From Podarcis gaigeae (Eukaryota), in the NCBI GenBank assembly GCA_964106915.2, contig OZ066926.1: a stretch of 64,000 bases of DNA; one strand, 5' to 3'. The notes beneath the pieces are model-generated. The model saw only the letters and a list, made by a program, of their open reading frames with translations. It was not told the origin of the DNA and did not search any database. The position numbers were made by a program, and so were the translations under genes. Shown here in pieces: positions 9,848 through 61,317 of the stretch. Position 1 is the stretch's first letter. Every line of letters starts with the position of its first letter.

Positions 9848-10720
9848 AATGTTAACTCAGTGACTGCTTCTTCACTCTAAAGAGGCAATTTCTATGGTAA
9901 AGCTGGAAGGAAGGAAGAGCACTTAGAACTACAGATCTAAATATAAATAAAGATCTAAAAGTGTTTGAGATCCATGCTCTTTTTGAGGCAGAGGAGAAAT
10001 GGTGGGGAAGTTACAAATTGCCACCTCCCAAGGTTGCTTTAGAACTGAGAAGTGACTAATCTGTTAATGTTCAACACAAAGCAGAGTTCCGCTTGCACCT
10101 TCTTCTTTCCAAAGACATGTGCTATCCATGTGAGGGAGGATATATTGTCTTTGGCAGAAGATTTTAGAATGGCAGGTCTGCAGCTTTATTACAGTAGGCA
10201 ATGGACATTATCCTCCTTTTTAGAGTCACTTTCACTTTGGCAAAACAGCCATGTGTTTTTATTCTGTCTGAATACGCAGTACAGTGGTACCTTGGTTCTC
10301 AAATGCCTTGGTACTCAAACAACTTGGAATCCAAACACTGCAAACCTGGAAGTAAGTGTTCCGGTTTGCAAACTTTTTTTGGAAGCCGAATGTGCTCTAT
10401 TTTTAGTGTTACACTTCCGTTTTGAGTGTTACTCTGAGGTTTATCTGTTCTTGCTATTTTTTTGCATTTTTGTTTTGCGGCTTTTTTTGTGACTCTGTGG
10501 AACCCAGTTTAGCTACTGATTGATTGATTGATTGATTGATGGTGTGACTGCAGGACATTGTTTATTGCTTTCATTTTATGGATCAATGGTTTCGTTAGCT
10601 AGTAAAATTCATGTTGAATTGCTGTTTTAGGGGTTGCTTTTAAAAGTCCAGAATGGATTAATCCATTTTGCATTACTTTCTATGGGAAAGTGCACCTTGG
10701 TTTTGGAACGCTTTGGTTTT

Positions 10721-12678
10721 TTTTTCTTCAAGTAATGTTTATTGAGATTTTCCAGATGATGACAAAAACAAAAAGAAAAAATTAAAAAGAAAAAAACAAA
10801 TATCCAACAAAGAAAAACAAAAACACATAATGTTTAAAGAGCCTTATCTTCTTTCACCTTATTTCTCAGACCTCCCCCCCTCCCCTTCTTGCATTCCAAT
10901 TTATATTATCTGCTCAACAAGTTCTTATCATATTTCTCAACCTTAACTTAATAATTTCATTATTTAATACTATTTATTTTCTTCTTTCTTCCATTTCTCA
11001 ATTAATTTGAGAGCCTTATTTCTAATTAAAAGACCCCATTTTAACTTGATCTTAAACCTTTTTCCTAAAATCGACCCAAATTTCCCTTCCACAATTTCCC
11101 CACATTCCATAAAAATCACAAAAGTTATAAAAAGAAAAAAGAACTTAACAAAACTATATTTTAAGACCCTTTGGATTCCCAAGTCCCACCCTCCCTTTCC
11201 CGGTATGATCCCCAAACCAATGTCCATCAGTCCATCATTTCTCAGCCTGGATCTCAGATTTCCGAGGCTCTTAATGCTCTTTCCATTTCACTCTGCCGAA
11301 TTTTCTTCACCATCCTTTGTATTCAACACCAAATCTCAAGGAAGATCTGTTCCAGTAATGACCATTTTTCTTCCAGACAGGCCTCTAAGTTTAAAAGTGG
11401 AGCTCAAATTTTGTTCCTTAAATTTTTTAAATCTGTATGTCCCAAAAGCTCGAACTTCCATCTTGATCTCACTTGAACTAACAGGCCTCTGATCTGCCTT
11501 GATCTTCCACAACATTATGGCTTCACCTTCATTTTCCACCAAATTTTCCACCAAATCCTCATGTATCTCTTTTTCCACTTTTTCCACTTTCTCAAGTTTG
11601 TCGAATTTCTTTTGCCCAGCTGCAGCCACTTCTGTTCCAACTTCAAGGGCTTTTGGTTCCACGACAAAGACTTGTGTCAAGTCTCTTACTTTTCCAGCAA
11701 ATTTATTTACTGCTTCTTTCAATGTTGTCGCCCTTGTAGTCAAAATATTACCTTGATCCTGGATCTCTCCCTGTAGTTCCTGGAGCTCTCCCAGGAGATA
11801 AAATGTCCTGTTCAGCTCAATCAGTATTTTTCCACTTACAGCCATTTCTTGCAGTGTTCCACAACTCCCCTCTAGGGGGATTTTATTTACTTAGTATCTT
11901 TCCAGTTCCAATCCAAAAGTCCAATGTAGCTTATTTTTCTTTATTTCCAACAATTTGTATCCAAATTACAGAAAATCTAACCGGCAGTATCACCAGAAAC
12001 AACGGTTCCTTTTATTCCCCAGCTTTGACAGCTAATTTGACAGCTGTCAAAGTCTGTATCTTTTAAACAGGCTCTTTCACAGATCACTCCCGGGTCCCGT
12101 GGGGCTGCACTTTAACTTTCGAAACCAACTCTTATCCTCCAGCAAAATTAATTATAATGTCCAATCATGAAATTAATAAGTTTTCTCCACAAGGGACAAA
12201 GATGTTTCTCTCAACTTTAGTTCTCAAGTCCTTGCTTTAGGTTGTTTGCAAGGCGGGGGGGGGGGGGGACATCCTTTTTACCCCTTCCCCGGTCGTACCG
12301 AATTCCAAGACAAAGATACCTTTTTAAGTCCAATTTCCTTATTACTCACGGGTTGTTGCTTTTAGTCCGAATGATCAAGGGAAAAAGTCAGCGCTCTCCG
12401 TCCATGGCATGCGGCTTCACTCAGCAGGGTGAGCAGAGGACTCTCAGCACCGCGCCGCTCCCCGCTCCCCGTTCCGTAGCCTTTAAAAAGGCTCCTTCAC
12501 AGGTCGGGGGGGGCGTTAATGGTGCCCACCGAGTCACCACGTCCACAGGCATCCGCGCCTGTGGTTTTTAAGGGTCCCCGCGTCGCCGGTGCGGCAGGAC
12601 CCGAACCCTGTTGAGCCGATTCCCTCCGGAGCTCGGAGGGAATCCGCCATTAAGCGATGGCGCTAACCCGGAAGTCCC
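10721..12678 (-). mobile_element. Full-length non-autonomous poly(A) retroelement (HAL1/L1-like), copy 1
   Basis: 17-bp TSD tggaacgctttggtttt (10704-10720 / 12679-12695); GC-rich 5' end GGGACTTCCGGGTTAGCGCCAT; AATAAA (10738-10743) and A tail; no RT motifs; homologous to 30332-32044. Confidence 0.88.
11336..11845 (-). pseudogene. Coiled-coil-like ORF (169 aa) inside the retroelement, probably disrupted at its 3' end
   Basis: E/K/L-rich heptad-like sequence; blocks NRTFYLLG, ILT....TLKE and MEV..FGT.RF recur in frameshifted form in copy 2. Confidence 0.55.
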
Positions 12679-14364
12679 TGGAACGCTTTGGTTTTGGAAC
12701 GGACTTCTGGAACAGATTAAGTTTGAGAACCAAGGTACCACTGTAGCCCAGATGGACTCAGGCTTGAGGAGACTGAGGATTTGATTAAACCTGGTGAAGT
12801 GTAAAACAGCACAGGTGGCTTTTTGCTGGCAGGGTGTTGCAGAGGGATTAATCTATGAAAGTGTTTGCTATGGTTACCAGGTGAGAAGAAGAGTTTTGCT
12901 TAGAGGAAACACCAAGCCTTCATTACAGAGAACTTTTGACACAACAAGCTATCTTGTGCTAGCCATTTTCCCACCACCCAGCCCTCCTTGCCTGCTTGTA
13001 AGAGAAGTCTGAGACCCACAGCTTGTAAATCAAGGCCAAAAGAGCAAGATGCACTGCATCCTTCCTTTGAGAAAAAAACTATGAGCTGTTTCAAATCTCT
13101 GTGCTGGAAAGTGCCTTGGCAGTCAGGGTTTCCAGTGTGTTTATCCAAGGCATACACCCAGAAAAGCACCTGTGCTGTAAGTCATACATTATATGACATG
13201 TGAATCAAAGGCACGTTCCTTCGGTGCTGCATTTCGGAAGGAGGAAACTGACTGGGGTTTGGGTGGGTGGCTGAGGCAAACATAAGTGCAACCGTGGAGC
13301 AGGGAGGGCTCTAAATTCAGTGTTTGGCACCCAGGCGGACTGTCTTTCTCCCAAGCAAACAGAAAGGGAAGAGATAGTATCAGAAAAACCAGTATTGCTG
13401 ACAAAAGAGAAAGATCAGCATTGCTGACATGTGAATCCCATACACTGCCACCTTTGGCGTAATTCACCGCATAATCATCAAACACGCCTTTTTTGGAAAG
13501 CAAAATCGTCATTAAAAATGTGACAATTATGCGGTGAATTATGGTACATCCTACAACATTGGCCATTGGCCAAATAGGCAGGCAAGCTGTGATCCACTTC
13601 CTAGGCCTAGGTGAAGCTGAAAAGGGTTCACCCAGGCCCAGGAAAAACCCCTTGCCTCCAGCACAACTGCTGGATCCAGGAGAGGCATTGTCACCGTCCC
13701 ATAACAGTGCCCAATCTGGCTGTAAGCATCATTACACAACAGATGAAGCATGTACACATGGTTTTTCAATTTTTCTTCTCTTCTTTCTTTAGGCTTCCAC
13801 CACCATTTTTATTCTTTGCCCCTCAATTGCACCTGAGGTTACTACGCCCCCCTGGATGACCCCCCCCCCAGGAATGGGAAACACTGATCTAGTGTAAGCT
13901 GTGTGCAAGCTCAGGATTTCTTCACTTATAATTATTTATCCCCTTATGTAATGATTATGTGCATTTCAGGACAAAGTTAGTTAATTTGTAAATGCTCATA
14001 GCGTGAAGTACTTAGGGGTTGGCCATGACGTTAACAAGTCTGTAGTCCTATCTTTAGACATAAAAATGGAAGGCTGTCTTCTTCTAGCCCCCATTTCAGG
14101 ATTATTGTGCCCCATCACAGTACTGTATTTGCATGAACCTGGGCCGGGAAGGGCACCAGAAGTGAAGAGAAGTTGCAGAATAGTAATGGGCATGGCATAG
14201 GAGTGAGAAGGGAAGGGACACTTATAGGGAAGAACGCTGCCTTGAGTCCCATCAGGGGAAAAGGCAAGGTATAAAGAAATACATAACAACAATAAGTGGT
14301 GGCATGAGAATGAGGTTGAAGATGAAAGCAGGGGCCTGAAAGGGTCTGAAGAATTGGAGGGGGT

Positions 14365-28290: not shown

Positions 28291-30331
28291 GGAATGCTTG
28301 CCTCAGAAAGGATCTCCTGATGCTGACAGTGGAATAAAGAGGCAATCCTTCTTTATTTTACCTTTAGTAAAATCCCCTAAAGCAATGCCTCTTTATTCTC
28401 GCTGGCATTTTAATAATTAAGGTTTAGTCCTTTGAGCTATCTTTGATGGGGAGCATGCCTGGACTGTTTTGTGGGCCTGTCTCTATTTGAGATGTGCCAG
28501 ACCTTTCCATCTTGTGCTGTGCTTCCACTGCAGCCATTTTTAAACTGGTGCCCTGTGCCCACAGCATTTCTACAAAGTTCTAAGTGTGCCCCCCATTAGC
28601 TGAGAGAGGTTGGCTAACAGCAATCACTTCACACTAATCTGCACTGCCATGTCTTGCCAAATTGCAGATTGCAGATCAGAAATAGAAGCAAAATGCATGG
28701 CATACAGCTGATGTGTAGCATCCCCTCCGGGATTGGCTGCCAGTCTGCAGCTTTGCAGTGCTGACAATTCCTACTTAAAACATGGCTTGCTAGATACTGC
28801 TCCTCATCCCTAGTACAGAAACTCATCTTACACTGCATTCACTTCTACAATCACAGGGTACATATAATAAAAGAGGCATTGTCTGTCTGTAAGGCTCACT
28901 CACATTTCTTTGAAGGTAATAATCCCCTTGCAAGTGACTGAATAAAGAAATTGGAGTTCACAGTTGGGGTATTGATCAGGTCCACGCCTGCATAACTTCA
29001 ACCATGCTGCAACCTAAGGCAAACTTGTATTCTCCTTTGAATAGTGCTGGAAGAACATTTGGTATTATCAATAAAGAGTCAGCAAATTCTTGTGCTCTCA
29101 GAGTTCTTTGCTGCTGTAAACCATTTCAATGAAACAATATTTTGAGACCTTCTTTAAAAGCATGCCTTCAACCAAACCATTATTTGCTCACCTTCCAGAG
29201 ATCAATAATACCCCTACAGTGGCTCATTGTCTAAAAACAGCTGGCTGTTTAGCCTTTATTTTGTTTTTGAAGTATTTTCCTTTAAAGTGAAATTCATCAG
29301 TCAAAAAAGGTTGCAAGAAAGGTGTACTGGGACTAAAATGACTTAAAATCCCTTAAAGCCTTCAGGGCTGGGAGTAAATCGGTTTCTGTTGTAGGTCATG
29401 CTTTGGGGGCAATACAAGACAAGAATGTTCATTTCTGTATTTATGTGATAACCTACCGGTACCAGTAGTCCTCATATTAACAGGTGTTGAGCTATAAAGC
29501 TGGTGCCAATGGGCTACCTTTATTTTTACATAGGTCAGCATCCTACATCTGTCTCCTTTGAAGGTCAAGGTGGCCTTTGCAAACAATGCTGGCTGTACCT
29601 TTAGTATCCAACCCTAACTGTTGGGATAGAGGTTAAAAAGAGGAAAATTAACCACAAGCCCCCAAATTTGGGATCCTCTCCAAACCTGTGCCCAACTGTT
29701 GCAGTTTTTTTTGCAGCGAAAACCCCACGTTTTTTCAGCACCGCAGTTAATGGGGCCGTTAAAAAGTCGTGCTGTGAAATTTTAAATAGCATCTTATGTT
29801 TTGTGTTTTGTGTTGTAGCGGTTAGAGTGTTGTTTTGGATGTGTGAGTTCCGATACCCTTAGAACTAAGAGAAAGAGTTGCTTCAGAACTGCGGCTACAT
29901 AAGTATTTGCATTGGTAAACACATGAAAGGGGAGACTAAGACGTCTGAGACATAAAAATACTCACAAATGACAACACTTCTGAAATTTCTCATTTTAGGA
30001 CACCTCCCCTACTTAACAGTGAACTTTAGTTATTTCAGCTGGAGGATTTATATCAGGAGGATGTGACTGTACAAGTTGCCGGATGAGAGGCAGGCCCTCC
30101 CCCACTTCTTTGTGGGAGGGTTGTTCATTTTAGTGATGAAGTGGCATGTCCTCTCAGATGTCTCAACCGCTGTTAGGATCAATTGCTAAGGATCAGGGAA
30201 GTCCTTGATAGCACAGGTGAGACAGGTAGAAGCACGTTCTGCAGTCTTGCCCACTCAGCCTTACTTTTAAGCTGATAGGATTCCTAATGATCACGAAAGA
30301 AATGTTAAGACTGTCCAGGCATTTCCTTTAA

Positions 30332-32044
30332 TTTTTTTAAAAAATAATATTTATTAAAGATTTTCAAATATAACAAAAAAAGAAAAACATCCAAATTTAA
30401 AACCTTATTTTCATTGGCATCTTTCCAGGACTTCCCCTCCCCTCCCCCTCTTATATTCCAATTCTTTCAAATAAATTCAACAAATTCTTACCCCCAATTT
30501 TAAACTTATTATCATTGACCCAATTTAAAAATATTTTCCCATCCCCTAAAATCGACCTGTTCCCTTCCACGAGTTCCCCTCTTTAATATGCAATACAGAT
30601 TAGAATAAAAAAATTAAGAAAAAGAATAAGATATAATTTAACACCCTTTGGATTCCAAATTTCCCTCCCCCCTTTCCCGGTTGCGTTCCCAATGTCCATC
30701 AATGTCTACTGTCGTCCTGGAGCTCCCACACTTAAGCCATAGTCCTTCACCAGTCCGCTTTGCCGTCTTTTTAATAGTCTTTGCCGTCTTTTGGTCCTTT
30801 TTAGTTTCGAATGTCCAATCTTGGAAGGAGTCTGTCTCAAAAAGGTCCATTTTTTCCATCCAGATCTTTGTATTTAAGAATAAAAACTCCAATTTTATTT
30901 CTTTAGACCTTTCAAATCTGGATGTCCCAAATGTTCCCACTTCCAACTTTATCCAGTTCTTGTTGTTCTTGTTGTTCTTGTTGATCTCTCTCCTCCTTTT
31001 TTCCCCCTGCTCTCCTGCACAAATGTTCTAATTCCAAAAGCTTCTAATTCCTCTGCAGAGGCTTTGTTATTCAGGAACAAAACATTACGTCAAGTCCCTT
31101 CCATTCTTCAATAGATAAATCTATTGTCTCCTTTAGTGTATAGACCTCTGTAGACAAAATAGTGTTCCATTTCTGCAGTTTCCCAGGAGATAAAAAGTCC
31201 TATTTCAAATTCCATGCCAACAATACTTGTAGTGTCTCACAGCTCCTCTAGAGGGATTATAGTAACTCAGTTTCCTTCCAGATCACACCCAACAGTCAAA
31301 ATAACTTGTTATTCCTTGTTTTAAACAATTTATATCCAATTTGTAACAAATGTAACCGGCAAAGTCCTTGTAACAAAGTTCTCTTTTTATTCTTCCGCTT
31401 TGACAGCTCCTTTGACAGCTGTCAAAACCTCTATTTCTCATCTCCCGGCGCTCTCACGGATCGCTCCCGGGGTTCGGGGGGGTTGCATTTTAATTCACAT
31501 TCCACTTTTCTCCTCCAGCCCAGTCTTATAATTTTCCATCGCGAAATTAATAACTTTCTCAAAATAAGGTTACACTCGATCTTAGTTGTCAAATCCTTTG
31601 CTTTAACCCCTCTACAACAGGGGGGAGGCTGACTTCCTTTTTGCACCTCCCCCACTCGCTCCGAATTTTTAACAAAAAATTTTTTCTCCTTTTTAATTCA
31701 AGTTCCAATTACTCACGGGTTATTATTTTAAGGCCAAATTTTCAATGGAAGAAGTCAGCGCTGTCCGTTGAATGGCATGCGGCTTCGCTCGGCAGGGGAA
31801 GCGGAGGACTCATAGCACCACCACCCCCCCGTCACCCGCTCCGCAGCCTTTAAAAAGGCTCCTTCGCAGGTCGGTGGGGCGCAAAAGGTGCCCGCCAATT
31901 CACCATGCCCATGGGTTTCAGCACCCATGGTTTTTGAGGGTCCCCGCGTCGCCGGCGCGGTAGGACCCAGCCCCTGCCGAGCAGGCTCCCTCCAGAGCTC
32001 GGAGGGAGTCCGCCATTCGGTGATGGCGCCAACCCGGGAGTCTT
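30332..32044 (-). mobile_element. Full-length non-autonomous poly(A) retroelement (HAL1/L1-like), copy 2
   Basis: 21-bp TSD ctgtccaggcatttcctttaa (30311-30331 / 32045-32065); 5' leader homologous to copy 1; AATAAA (30350-30355) and short A tail; no RT. Confidence 0.88.
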
Positions 32045-32836
32045 CTGTCCAGGCATTTCCTTTAAAACCAGAAACTTGTCTTATGGTATCTCTCTCTTTT
32101 ATTACCTCTTAGCAGCATGACACGTCTATAATACTTCTCTAGCAGGGCCTTTGCTTTGTTTGCATGTCCATGAATTGTATTTCAGCATTTCTGTTGCAGC
32201 TGCATCAGAACACACACGGCTGAAAGTGCAAAAGCTCTGCCTTTGCCAAACTTGCTCCTTCATATAGCTCTCTCACCTTGTTTGTGCCATACCAAATGCA
32301 CAGCACCCTTCTCGTCACTATTTTTAAACTAATCCCCTCCCACCTTATTGTTGCTACTCTTGACTTTTTTATTCTTTTGTAAAGGTGTTCCAGGTAAATT
32401 TGGACAACTTTTCATTAATCAGTAACACTTTCAAAAGTGTTCCAGTTTTCACCACTAAATCCCTAATTGTGAAGAATCTTTTACAGAATAAAATGCTTCA
32501 AAGGGGACAGGGGAGCACAGGTAAAAAGAAAATATTGGAATGTCTCTGCTGCTTTCAGGAATTCTCATCTTGTCCCTCCTACAACAGCCCAGAAAACCTT
32601 TTACTTGTTTGGATAGCTGTTACCGTAGTCCCTGGGCGCTGAGCTCAGTCTCTTGAGGACTGTTTGCTATTTTGCTACTGCTGCCTCTATTATTATTTAT
32701 TAAATGAATCTGTTGCCTAACACCACAATTAAAACGTGGCATATAGCCCTGCAAAGGCCAGTTTTTAAAAATACATTAATCAACACTGACAACAAACCTC
32801 CAATTTAAACCGAAGGTAAAATATAAACTAAACCCC

Positions 32837-53124: not shown

Positions 53125-54445
53125 AGCAATTATACCGGCCTTATTTTTTACCATGAAGGATGGCCATTGTGCATCCATGAGAAGATCATAGTGCAACTGG
53201 CATCCCTCCACAAAGCCCGTTTAAAACCAGGAGATTTTTACTTCCAGATTGTGCCGGTGAGAAAGCAGTCAGTCAACCTAGTGTTAAAATGTCTCTCCAG
53301 ACATGGGCAAGGAATGGAAGAGCTTGTTGTACCTGAAACCATGTACGGATATATTTTCACAATAGAGTTTTTGGAAAATGTAAACGGTAAACTGAATGGC
53401 TGTCCTTTGCAAAGCTGCTTGCTGACTACAGGCCCAGCCATATATAGGACACCTTGGAAAAATATTGTGAACCCTATATTTGTCCCTACAGCTGAAACAA
53501 TTCTGCAGACATATTCCAAAAGCTCTCTGCTTGAGAAATTGATCAGCAGCAGTCCTGATGCTAAAGCTATGACACAGACAATGGAAAGCAGCAGCTCACA
53601 TGAGAGTTCGACCTCTAATGATACCTGTTCTACCGTGATAGAGGTACCGCTTGCAGGCAACTGTGGAAACCAAGGTGATAATGATTCTGATTTATGTCAT
53701 GGCCCTGGGAGCAAGGCTGAAATACAAACCCCAGCACCCCAAGCTGAGCATGGAACTGTTGATGAAGCAAATCCAAGAGCACTTTCGGTTGCAGAGCAAG
53801 CCATCGAGGAACCAAAAATGACATCTGAATTGACACCTGATTTCTTTAAAGATTCAGCAACTCCTCCACTAGTGAAAAGGAATGGCCCCAAAAGCATATC
53901 CTTCAGCACAGACCTGAGCAGCCCATGTCAAAGAGGGCGGGATTCTCTGTATTTTGAAACAAAGCGATTGTTTAGAAAGTCTTATATAGAAGCTTTGCAA
54001 AACCCAATGAGTCTTGGTTCCAGCTCTGAGGAATCCATTGCAGAAGATGAACCGTCAGAGCATGTCATTGGACAGGTGGAGAATGAGTGCAGGGTCACTG
54101 AAAAAACATGTGAAAACAATGTTTGGCAAGAAAGCTGTTGGTCTGAAAGAATTTCAAAACAGGAGGAAACAAGACAGACAGTTAGATTTGGGAATCGTTC
54201 CCAGGCCTCTGAAAAATGGACTGTATCTCATGAAACAACATGTAGCAGGTCAGGTTCAAGAAGGTCACGGTCTTTAGACAGGACACATAAAAGCTCACAG
54301 AGTGAAGATTATAAATCCAGGGTGCCCTCAGATGCAGTGTTCAGTGAAAATCCCCCCAAAATCATAAATGGGCATTCTCCAAGGTCTGAGAGACTGGAGT
54401 CACATATTCATGAATTCATTGCTACAAAAAGCAAAGAGGATGAAG
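53125..54445 (+). CDS. PLEKHG4B: PLEKHG4B-like large exon (SNYTGLIFYHEGWPLCIHEKIIVQLASLH...SKEDE)
   Basis: Acceptor ctctctttttttacag| and donor GAAG|GTAAAA, 1321 nt, phase 0-1. HEGWPLC, PGDFY and LFRKSYIEALQNPM motifs; the remainder is a Ser-rich disordered linker. Confidence 0.93.
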
Positions 54446-54897
54446 GTAAAACAGATGCAAAGTAGATACCTCACTTATTCTTATTTAGTCAGCCTGTTTA
54501 AACCATGCTAACCGGTGTTCCTTTAGTTATTTTATTTTATTTTAGTTGGGAAGCATAGGTGCTATTTATGTTTATTTGTAGGGTGGCGGGGGGGTTGTTT
54601 TCTGCTGATATCCTGCTATATTCTGAGAGTTCAAAGATAAGTTTGTGGCTTTGAATGATGTAAATAGATCTATAACATTAAGCATACCAACAGCAGAACA
54701 AACAGAGCTAGGAAATGGAATGGCAGAGCTAGGAAATGGAAACAGCAACTACAGAGCTATCTCTCCTGTGATAGCAATTCTGATAACTCAAGGTTTAAAG
54801 TCACCATAGGCACAGTCTAAAGTGTTGGGAAATCAGTGGGATTTTACTTGCCCTGAACCAGTGCATGTGATTTAGGACCACTTACCACATGACATAT

Positions 54898-57593: not shown

Positions 57594-59170
57594 GTAATAA
57601 TTTTTTATTTATACCCCGCCCTCCCCAGCCAAGGCCAGGCTCAGAGCGGCTTACAAGCAATAATAAAAACAAGATGAATGATTACAACTTAAAAACAAAA
57701 ATAAAACACAACATTAAAATAATGGAACATTAAAATATTAAAATGTAGCCTCATCGCAGGAGGAGAAGGAAAAGAAAGGAAAAAAAGAGAGAGAGAGGGA
57801 GGGAGGGAATCAAATTGGCTCTAAGCCAAAGGCCAGGCGGAACAACTCTGTCTTACAGGCCCTGCGGAAAGAAATCAGATCCTGCAGGGCCCTGGTCTCA
57901 TGAGGCAGAGCGTTCCACCAGACCGGAGCCAGAGTTGAAAAGGCCCTGGCTCTGGTTGAAGCCAATCTAACTTCCTTAGGGCCCGGGACCACTAGGGTGT
58001 TGCTATTCATGGACCTTGAGGCTCTCCGTGGGGCATACCAGGAGAGGCGGTCCCGTAGGTACGAGGGTCCTAGGCCATGAAGGGCTTTAAAGGTCAAAAG
58101 CAGCACCTTAAATCTGACCCTGTACTCCACCGGGAGCCAGTGCAGCTTGAAAAGCACTGGGTGAATATGCTCCCATGGCAGAGACCCCTTGAGGAGCCTC
58201 GCTGCAGCATTCTGTACCCGCTGGAGTTTCTGGGACAGCTTCAAGGGCAGCCCCGCGTAGAGCGAATTACAGTAGTCAAGCCTGGAGATGACCGTCGCAT
58301 GGATCACTGTGGCCAAGTCAGGGCGGGAAAGGTAAGGGACCAACTGCTTGATGCGGCGAAGGTGGAAAAATGTCGCCTTGGCTGTTGCTGTAACTTGCGC
58401 CTCCATGGAAAGGGAGGCGTCAAGGATTACACCCAAACTCTTAACGGAAGGCAATGGCACTAATTGGGCCCCCGCAAGAGAAGGGAGTTGGTCCCTCATC
58501 CCCATGCCATCCCGACCTAGCCATAGGACCTCTGTCTTCGAAGGATTTAGTTTCAATCGGCTCCCACGAAACCATCCAGCCACAGCTTCCAAGCATCTGC
58601 TCAGTGTGTTCGGGGCCGAGTCAGTGTGGCCATCCATCAGCAGATAGAGCTGAGTGTCATCAGCATGTTGGTGACAGCCCAGCCCAAAGCTCCGGATAAT
58701 CTGGGCAAGGGGGCGCATAAAGATGTTAAAAAGCATTGGGGAGAGAATTGCGCCCTGCGGCACTCCACACACCAAGGAGTGGCGCGACGACATTTCCCTC
58801 CCTAGTGCCACCCCTGTCCCCGACCAGAGATAAAAGAGCACAACCAGTTACGGGCTATGCCCTGTATCCCCACGTCTGCAAGGCGGTGGTCCAGAAGATC
58901 ATGATCGACCATGTCAAAGGCTGCTGACAAATCTAAAAGGATCAGCAGTCCTGACCCGCCTCGATCCAGTTGTCTACGGAGATCATCTGTTAGGGCAACC
59001 AGAGCCGTCTCTGTCCCAAAACCAGGACGGAAACCGGACTGAAATGGATCTAATGCCGATGTTTCCTCCAGAAACCTACCAAGCTGTTCAGCAACCGCTC
59101 TCTCAATTACCTTACCCAGGTATGGAAGATTTGAAACTGGGCGGTAATTGGATAGGTCTAAGGGATCTAA
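57525..59170 (-). mobile_element. 5'-truncated L2-clade LINE with nearly intact RT
   Basis: NYRPVSNL, FQSGFR, LLDLSAAFD, GVPQGAILSP.LFNIF, HADD and SRLDYCNSL motifs; one frameshift at ~58820; stop at 57810; long (TTA)n tail at 57525-57600. Confidence 0.95.
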
Positions 59171-60457: not shown

Positions 60458-60826
60458 TTGTTGTTGTTGTTTAGTCGTTTAGTCGTGTCCGACTCTTCGT
60501 GACCCCCTGGACCAGAGCACGCCAGGCACTCCTGTCTTCCACTGCCTCCCGCAATTTTGTCAGACTCATGTTCGTAGCTTCGAGAACACTGTCCAACCAT
60601 CTCGTCCTCTGTCGTCCCCTTCTCCTTGTGCCCTCCATCTTTCGCAACATCAGGGTCTTTTCCAGGGAGTCTTCTCTTCTCATGAGGTGGCCAAAGTATT
60701 GGAGCCTCAGCTTCAGGACCTGTCCTTCCAGTGAGCACTCAGGGCTGATTTCCTTCAGAATGGATATGTTTGATCTTCTTGCAGTCCATGGGACTCTCAA
60801 GAGTCTCCTCCAGCACACATAATTCA
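60458..60826 (-). mobile_element. RTE-BovB LINE 3' fragment
   Basis: CWRRLLRVPWTARRSN...VTKSRTRLND and (CAA)n tail; close relative of 9504-9847. Confidence 0.95.
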
Positions 60827-61317
60827 TCAAGGCCCTAGAATAATAGGTTGCTTGAAACAGAAGAACTACTAAAAACCACTGTTTATATAGGGTGTAACAG
60901 CAGCTAGATACAGCAGAGGGTAGGGCTCCTGTTCCTATGCTGTGGGTGAGAGGGGCTTCAGCAAGGATGCGAGGCTGCCCCAGCTGAAATTCATTTTTCT
61001 TTGCAGTTGTTGGAGGTACAAGAGTGTGGCCAGCCTGGTGTGAATGTTTCACACTGTAGTTATTTCATTTATTATTATTATTATTATTTATTTCTTGTAC
61101 CCCACCCATGTGACTCGGTTGCCCCAACCACTCTGAATGAGAACAATCAGGGAACATTGCAAGGATCAGTGCGGCTCTCCATGTGCTGCCTCTCAGCTAG
61201 TTCTGGCACATGTACAGATGCTTACAGGTGCACCAGTTCTTTTGGGGTGCCCCTTGAAGTTCTCTTGTATGTAGCAGGTCTTGGCACCCAGGTCTCTTGA
61301 TGCTGAAGCATCTGTAT

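Follow-up and report, generated by a model that had tools for sequence, protein, structure and literature searches.

We examined a 64,000-nucleotide (nt) stretch of the genome of the lizard Podarcis gaigeae (contig OZ066926.1 of assembly GCA_964106915.2; hereafter the window), in which positions 10721–12678 hold a 1958-bp insertion. The evidence described below supports the view that this insertion, which we call copy 1, is a complete polyadenylated retroposed unit that lacks a reverse transcriptase (RT) and has a fixed 5' end. Copy 1 is on the minus strand and reads from 12678, its 5' end, to 10721, where the A tail ends. It is bounded by an exact 17-bp target-site duplication (TSD): the 17-mer TGGAACGCTTTGGTTTT is present on the 5' side (12679–12695) and, identically, on the poly(A) side (10704–10720). 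Read in the sense direction, copy 1 comprises an 833-nt 5' leader (11846–12678), which we regard as a putative internal promoter and structured RNA; an open stretch of 169 codons (11336–11845), which encodes an orphan protein; ~32 codons of decayed C-terminal remainder of a longer family open reading frame (ORF; 11242–11335); an A/T-rich 3' untranslated region (UTR; 10744–11241), which is the family's least conserved part in an alignment of subfamilies; an AATAAA polyadenylation signal (10738–10743), 12 nt upstream of the tail; and a short tail of five A's (10721–10725), or at most nine with those of the TSD included. The insert, its exact TSD, the AATAAA and the A tail had all been reported in an initial annotation made from the sequence alone, and each can be read directly from the letters.

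We surveyed related copies in Logan contigs from four sequencing runs, representing four organisms, mapped at a likeness of at least 85%. Copy variety was taken as the number of distinct contigs per position, and summed contig depth was not used as a copy number. The site that received copy 1 is itself a very abundant short interspersed element (SINE; window positions 10280–10720 and 12679–12745), represented by more than 100 distinct contigs per run and by a summed depth orders of magnitude above that of unique flanking sequence. In all four runs, contigs derived from other copies of this SINE span the joint between 10703 and 12679 and contain the 17-mer (17 shared letters) once. Because these other copies hold the 17-mer singly, the 17-bp duplication arose at the insertion of copy 1.

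A second copy in the window, also on the minus strand, occupies positions 30332–32044 (1713 bp) and belongs to a divergent subfamily. It is flanked by an exact 21-bp TSD, CTGTCCAGGCATTTCCTTTAA, with identical repeats on the 5' side (32045–32065) and the 3' side (30311–30331). Copies 1 and 2 share the same aligned first base (GGGACTTCCGGG vs AAGACTCCCGGG) and are collinear over their full length, with a mean column identity of 79% and with BLAST blocks that are 72% identical. The alignment thus agrees with the initial description of copy 2 in its length, TSD, 5' position and collinearity. Despite its perfect TSD, copy 2 has a broken ORF region, with gaps of 14, 22 and 66 nt and several stop codons. 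Copy 1 is slightly decayed and copy 2 strongly so, and it is unlikely that either is a source element.

Copy 1 is a member of a multi-copy family that is present in several species. Each run supplies 10–40 distinct contigs over a given interior position of the element, vs one contig in the unique flank at 12826–13200. One 155-nt contig, from organism B, is identical to copy 1 and has a depth ~6 times that of the unique flank. Summed depth peaks over the first ~350 nt and at 12018–12118, the same blocks that are best conserved between subfamilies; these blocks are common either to many subfamilies or to another element.

Protein searches identified intact relatives. Searching 1.84 billion representative proteins with the window ORF, phmmer returned a single match (P0001; 171 amino acids, E = 2e-4), to which the window ORF is 35% identical by BLASTP (E = 5e-15; range 35–43%). 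A profile word search added two proteins of 177 amino acids each (P0006 and P0007), all three proteins being encoded on short Logan contigs from other runs. The corresponding contigs (L001–L011) are collinear with the element from leader position 68 to the AATAAA and poly(A). Contig L007 spans leader positions 68–901 plus the ORF, and L003 starts at position 628, takes in the 3' UTR and AATAAA, and passes via 14 A's into unrelated flank. Together the contigs define three ~2-kb subfamilies at 70–80% DNA identity, each with an intact ORF of 171 or 177 amino acids. All three retain the same layout of leader, ORF, 3' UTR, AATAAA and poly(A), and the arrangement of AATAAA and tail is common to copy 1, copy 2 and L003. 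Since three collinear ~2-kb subfamilies carry intact ORFs, the 2-kb RT-less layout is a conserved unit rather than a sporadic deletion. The fixed 5' end and these subfamilies likewise bear out the earlier proposal that copy 1 is a complete unit and not a randomly truncated long interspersed element (LINE). An exact look-up of the 169-amino-acid ORF and of an antisense ORF in the leader returned no record in public assemblies, and a word-index protein search with the 169-amino-acid ORF found no match.

The 169-codon ORF at 11336–11845 is the only long sense frame in copy 1; the three sense frames are otherwise full of stops. When the element was shuffled 2000 times with its dinucleotides preserved, no shuffle contained an ATG-initiated ORF of 169 amino acids (mean 61, maximum 151). 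Among the three intact subfamily ORFs, the Nei–Gojobori ratio of non-synonymous to synonymous divergence (dN/dS) is 0.34–0.46 at dS values of 0.37–0.76, and synonymous change exceeds non-synonymous change in the intact ORF pairs (Fisher p = 8e-4, 2e-7 and 6e-4). The window ORF gives a dN/dS of 0.37–0.54 against its relatives, the value for P0001 being 0.37 (p = 2e-5) with dS saturated. Gaps between the subfamily ORFs amount to 0 or 18 nt, vs 46–74 gap columns at 68–72% identity in the equally long 3' UTR, where identity between subfamilies can be as low as 58%. All four subfamilies have an identical start context, AAGA(A)ATGG, in which −3 is A and +4 is G. The leader is depleted of ATG triplets, with 6 vs 14.8 expected in copy 1 (P = 0.0045) and 4 vs 14.1 in L007, and this depletion fits translation by scanning. 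These sequence comparisons, together with the similarity to P0001, indicate that the ORF is protein-coding and has been maintained by purifying selection.

Alignment to the relatives also revealed that copy 1 no longer encodes the whole protein. The family ORF has ~201 codons, of which copy 1 keeps 169, and all of its lesions lie in the C-terminal stretch. From tblastn and an alignment at the DNA level with the intact ORFs of the subfamilies, we placed the ancestral stop, a conserved PG-stop, at 11242–11244. At codon 170, the first lesion puts a TGA in place of the CGA of the relatives; most other copies of the same subfamily have G at 11338. The second is a 1-nt insertion near 11290, and the third is another in-frame TGA near 11251. 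The element does contain one small coding ORF under purifying selection, as initially annotated, but its 169 amino acids are a shortened version of the ~201-codon family ORF.

The encoded protein resembles nothing that we could identify outside the family. Pfam searches gave no match above noise level, either with the window ORF and P0001 (E values up to 10) or with P0006 and P0007 (E values up to 1). No L1 ORF1p model (Transposase_22, or the trimer, RNA-recognition motif (RRM) and C-terminal domain (CTD) models) matched any of these four sequences. A family profile compared with all PDB chains, which presumably include structures of L1 ORF1p, yielded low-complexity noise only at E values up to 10. 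The phmmer search of the 1.84 billion representative proteins recovered the element's own relatives and no host protein, and a search of the ESM Atlas gave no usable match. The initial annotation had called the element HAL1-like, after the ORF1-bearing HAL1 retroposons of mammals. As a statement of homology this is not supported, since the Pfam, PDB, phmmer and ESM Atlas searches revealed no similarity of the ORF to L1 ORF1p, and the term may be kept by analogy only.

Composition offers some indication of what the protein does. The intact proteins have an isoelectric point (pI) of ~10, and their C-terminal half, which contains an invariant GTYR..KQ block, has a pI of 11–11.7 and a charge of +15 to +18. 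AlphaFold2 models built from a single sequence and from an eight-row alignment reached predicted local distance difference test (pLDDT) values of 49 and 54, respectively. The models are confident only at an N-terminal helix (residues 2–26, pLDDT 75–92), the rest scoring below 55. The protein is thus fast-evolving, with an N-terminal amphipathic helix followed by a very basic, largely disordered C-terminal half. A predicted helix ahead of a basic tail points to a small protein that binds nucleic acids and perhaps oligomerizes. A complex prediction with three copies of P0001 residues 1–60 scored 0.02, which speaks neither for nor against self-association.

The leader is distinguished by its composition and conservation. 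The first ~400 nt have a GC content of 0.42–0.67 and an observed-to-expected CpG ratio of 0.67–1.23; over the rest of the element the ratio is at most 0.44 in 13 of 16 bins, with a maximum of 0.82. The CpG-rich 5' end reported in the initial annotation is thus CpG-island-like by this profile. The leader is also the best conserved part of the family: identity is 84% just upstream of the ORF, falls to 80–82% within it and is 72% over the 3' UTR. The CpG-island-like 5' part is presumably an internal RNA polymerase II (Pol II) promoter. A promoter that lies downstream of its start site would leave retroposed copies transcribable, so that several source lineages could persist.

Several shorter features of the leader are conserved. 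A palindromic block, TTGACAGCTGTCAAA..AGCTGTCAAAGC (12022–12050, minus strand), is exact in both window copies, with 0 such matches expected by chance, and is a candidate transcription-factor site. It is also present in L007, and BLAST blocks in L001, L003, L009 and L011 are 89–97% identical to the window copies there; a metagenome scan for the palindrome gave 0 matches. TGACAGCTGTCA is a putative dimer site for TALE-homeodomain proteins (MEIS/TGIF), which serves as a lead only. An 8-bp hairpin (12543–12564, minus strand) shows compensatory changes: among three sequences, three of its eight pairs are changed on both sides and still paired. Close to the 5' end, a AATGGCGGA box at +28 to +36 (12643–12651, minus strand) is conserved in the alignment of both window copies and resembles the YY1 core by which transcription of human L1 has its start fixed, making it a candidate YY1-type site.

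Other observations on the leader are of less certain significance. The hexamer CCCGTGAGTAAT at 12343–12348 on the minus strand (leader +331 to +336) resembles a splice donor or U1 site and is identical in copy 1, copy 2 and L007 amid an otherwise variable stretch; a spliced form was not seen. One contig, of run X1, joins position 12052 to 12329 and so skips 276 nt (12053–12328) in the variable middle of the leader. This skip lacks GT..AG ends on the element strand, which rules out leader splicing as its cause, and it probably represents a subfamily with a shorter leader. Gene calling placed a 90-amino-acid frame in the leader (L007:3–275, plus strand) that has no Pfam match and no relatives; it is probably a spurious product of the GC-rich sequence, and a word search with it for other leader-carrying elements, such as L1s, found no match. 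An Rfam search of the element and its flanks gave one chance-level microRNA match, located outside the element.

Neither copy encodes the enzymes of retroposition. In the sense ORFs tested from both copies, no Pfam family, endonuclease and RT families included, reached its curated cut-off in searches at E values of up to 10 for the 169-amino-acid ORF and up to 1 for the others, and the same was true of P0001, P0006 and P0007. The absence of endonuclease and RT motifs noted initially therefore stands, and at 1.7–2.0 kb the elements are too short to hold both enzymes. They are not autonomous L1s, as an ORF2 with APE endonuclease and RT domains is absent. Having neither endonuclease nor RT, the element must depend on enzymes supplied in trans to copy its poly(A) RNA.

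The insertion sites point to a candidate for the source of these enzymes. L1-type endonucleases nick after a run of T or T/A and before purines, and L1-mobilized retroposons have TSDs of variable length, ~7–20 bp. In the sense orientation, the first-strand nick sites are TTTT/GG for copy 1 and TTTAA/AA for copy 2, these two sites being the whole sample. Together with the 17- and 21-bp TSDs and the poly(A), they fit insertion of the L1 type. The 3' end consists of a polyadenylation signal and an A tail, without a conserved LINE-specific 3' tail. No L1 lies within the 64-kb window. Elsewhere in the window, an RT fragment on the minus strand at 57810–58841 (Pfam RVT_1, E = 2e-14) has a C-terminal sequence that we take to be CR1/L2-like, and a LINE tail at 60471–61052, also on the minus strand, is by our reading BovB-like. 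A 432-codon open frame on the plus strand (53167–54465), rich in Ser and Glu and without a Pfam match, is probably a large coding exon of a host gene.

Taken together, we think it probable that copies 1 and 2 belong to a family of non-autonomous, polyadenylated, non-LTR (non-long terminal repeat) retroposons of ~1.7–2.1 kb that are mobilized in trans by the L1 protein ORF2p. Transcription would be driven by Pol II from the internal promoter, so that the promoter travels with the transcript. The RNA would be polyadenylated and the small basic protein translated from it. The poly(A) RNA, or a ribonucleoprotein containing it, would then capture the ORF2p of a lizard L1 in trans, and target-primed reverse transcription at T-rich nicks would generate duplications of 17–21 bp. 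The most likely role of the protein in such a cycle would be that of a Gag or ORF1p analogue, which binds its own RNA and helps it reach the borrowed enzyme. More tentatively, and at less than even odds, the family may be a lacertid lineage of LINE parasites with its own non-L1 protein under purifying selection. Parallel source lineages of this kind would issue from a structured, promoter-bearing leader, and ORF-less 1.7-kb derivatives such as copy 2 would ride on them.

Several observations weigh against this interpretation. Copy 2 has an exact 21-bp TSD even though its ORF is destroyed; if its subfamily is wholly ORF-less, then the protein would not be needed in cis for mobilization. The structure models are poor and provide no fold support for an ORF1p-like function. 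The evidence for L1 as the driver is the insertion signature, the A tails are short (5–9 A's), and we found no RNA sequencing runs containing this stretch.

We considered three alternatives. The best of them concerns only the origin of the family and is compatible with mobilization in trans: the element may be a true lizard HAL1, an ancient derivative of an L1 by internal deletion that retains L1 UTRs and a shortened ORF1, with an N-terminal coiled coil and a basic tail, diverged past recognition. Its layout is L1-like, with a long CpG-rich leader, a AATGGCGG box at +28, an ORF that begins with a helix, an AATAAA and poly(A), and in mammals HAL1s arose several times independently (PMC5753468). 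Against such an origin, the ORF matches neither the ORF1p trimer, RRM and CTD models nor any solved chain, even at E values up to 10, and among 1.84 billion proteins phmmer recovered the element's own relatives only. At ~200 amino acids, the ORF is also too short for an RRM plus a CTD. We therefore regard a HAL1 origin as doubtful, though it is the strongest of the alternatives.

The second alternative holds that the element is a non-coding composite resembling the SVA retroposons, in which the ORF is incidental and selection acts on the RNA through leader structure and poly(A). The leader is indeed conserved at least as well as the ORF (84% vs 80–82%), and copy 2, with its exact TSD, has no ORF. 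Yet dN/dS is significantly below 1 in all pairs of the three intact ORFs and the window ORF, the indels within the ORF are in frame only, and three ORFs have stayed intact at dS values of 0.37–0.76. The conserved start context and ATG-poor leader likewise argue for translation, and we consider a non-coding element improbable.

The least probable alternative, to which we give very little weight, is that the copies are processed pseudogenes or retrogenes of a host gene or long non-coding RNA passively copied by L1: retrocopies of a single mRNA would likewise share their 5' end and have TSDs and poly(A), and GTGAGT is conserved at leader position +331, but the subfamilies are 20–30% apart and each includes copies with perfect TSDs or near-identical contigs – a pattern that implies several parallel source lineages – while the genomes of four organisms each hold tens of distinct variants, no host protein among the 1.84 billion representatives resembles the ORF, and the transcribed unit itself contains the CpG-rich, promoter-like part.

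Our preferred reading, a coding family mobilized in trans by L1, invites comparison with known systems. To our knowledge, protein-coding retroposons that lack an RT are rare, and those known, HAL1 and HeT-A, both carry a recognizable LINE Gag or ORF1. The lizard family is like HAL1 in being non-autonomous, RT-less and ~2 kb long, with its own 5' end, a single ORF and poly(A), and HAL1 elements are mobilized by L1 and have originated repeatedly (PMC5753468). It differs in that HAL1 is found in mammals and its ORF is a recognizable L1 ORF1, whereas the lizard ORF of ~200 amino acids has no ORF1p match. HeT-A and other Gag-only telomeric non-LTR elements of Drosophila similarly encode only a Gag-like protein and take their RT from another element; lineages of this kind are discussed in PMC13534243. 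HeT-A has telomeres as its target and a Gag with known domains, whereas the lizard insertions are dispersed (one of them in a SINE) and have L1-type TSDs and an orphan protein.

Two further classes of L1-dependent sequence share features with the lizard family. The hominoid SVA and LAVA elements are likewise ~2 kb, transcribed by Pol II, polyadenylated and mobilized by L1 in trans with L1-type TSDs (PMC3287187, PMC5174737). They are non-coding composites of repeats, in contrast to a family with a conserved ORF and no recognizable repeat modules. Processed pseudogenes have poly(A) and TSDs, are intronless and are made by L1, but they have no promoter of their own and form no self-propagating subfamilies, whereas the lizard family has diverging source lineages. 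A literature search, with Repbase and Dfam outside its scope, found no description of such a family, and we provisionally consider it undescribed.

If the more tentative reading, with a non-L1 protein and ORF-less derivatives that ride on the coding elements, is correct, then lacertid genomes would harbor a three-tier system composed of L1, a coding parasite of L1 and a non-coding parasite of that parasite, and the family would represent a new vertebrate 'Gag-only' hitch-hiker. Squamate repeat libraries should include the family, as its copies otherwise risk being labeled 'L1 fragment' or 'unknown'. The family provides natural study material, since some subfamilies are intact and coding, some copies have decayed, and some relatives apparently lack the ORF yet have perfect TSDs. 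Such material bears on the question of where accessory proteins of this kind come from, and on what a non-autonomous RNA needs beyond poly(A) to capture the L1 RT despite the enzyme's cis preference.

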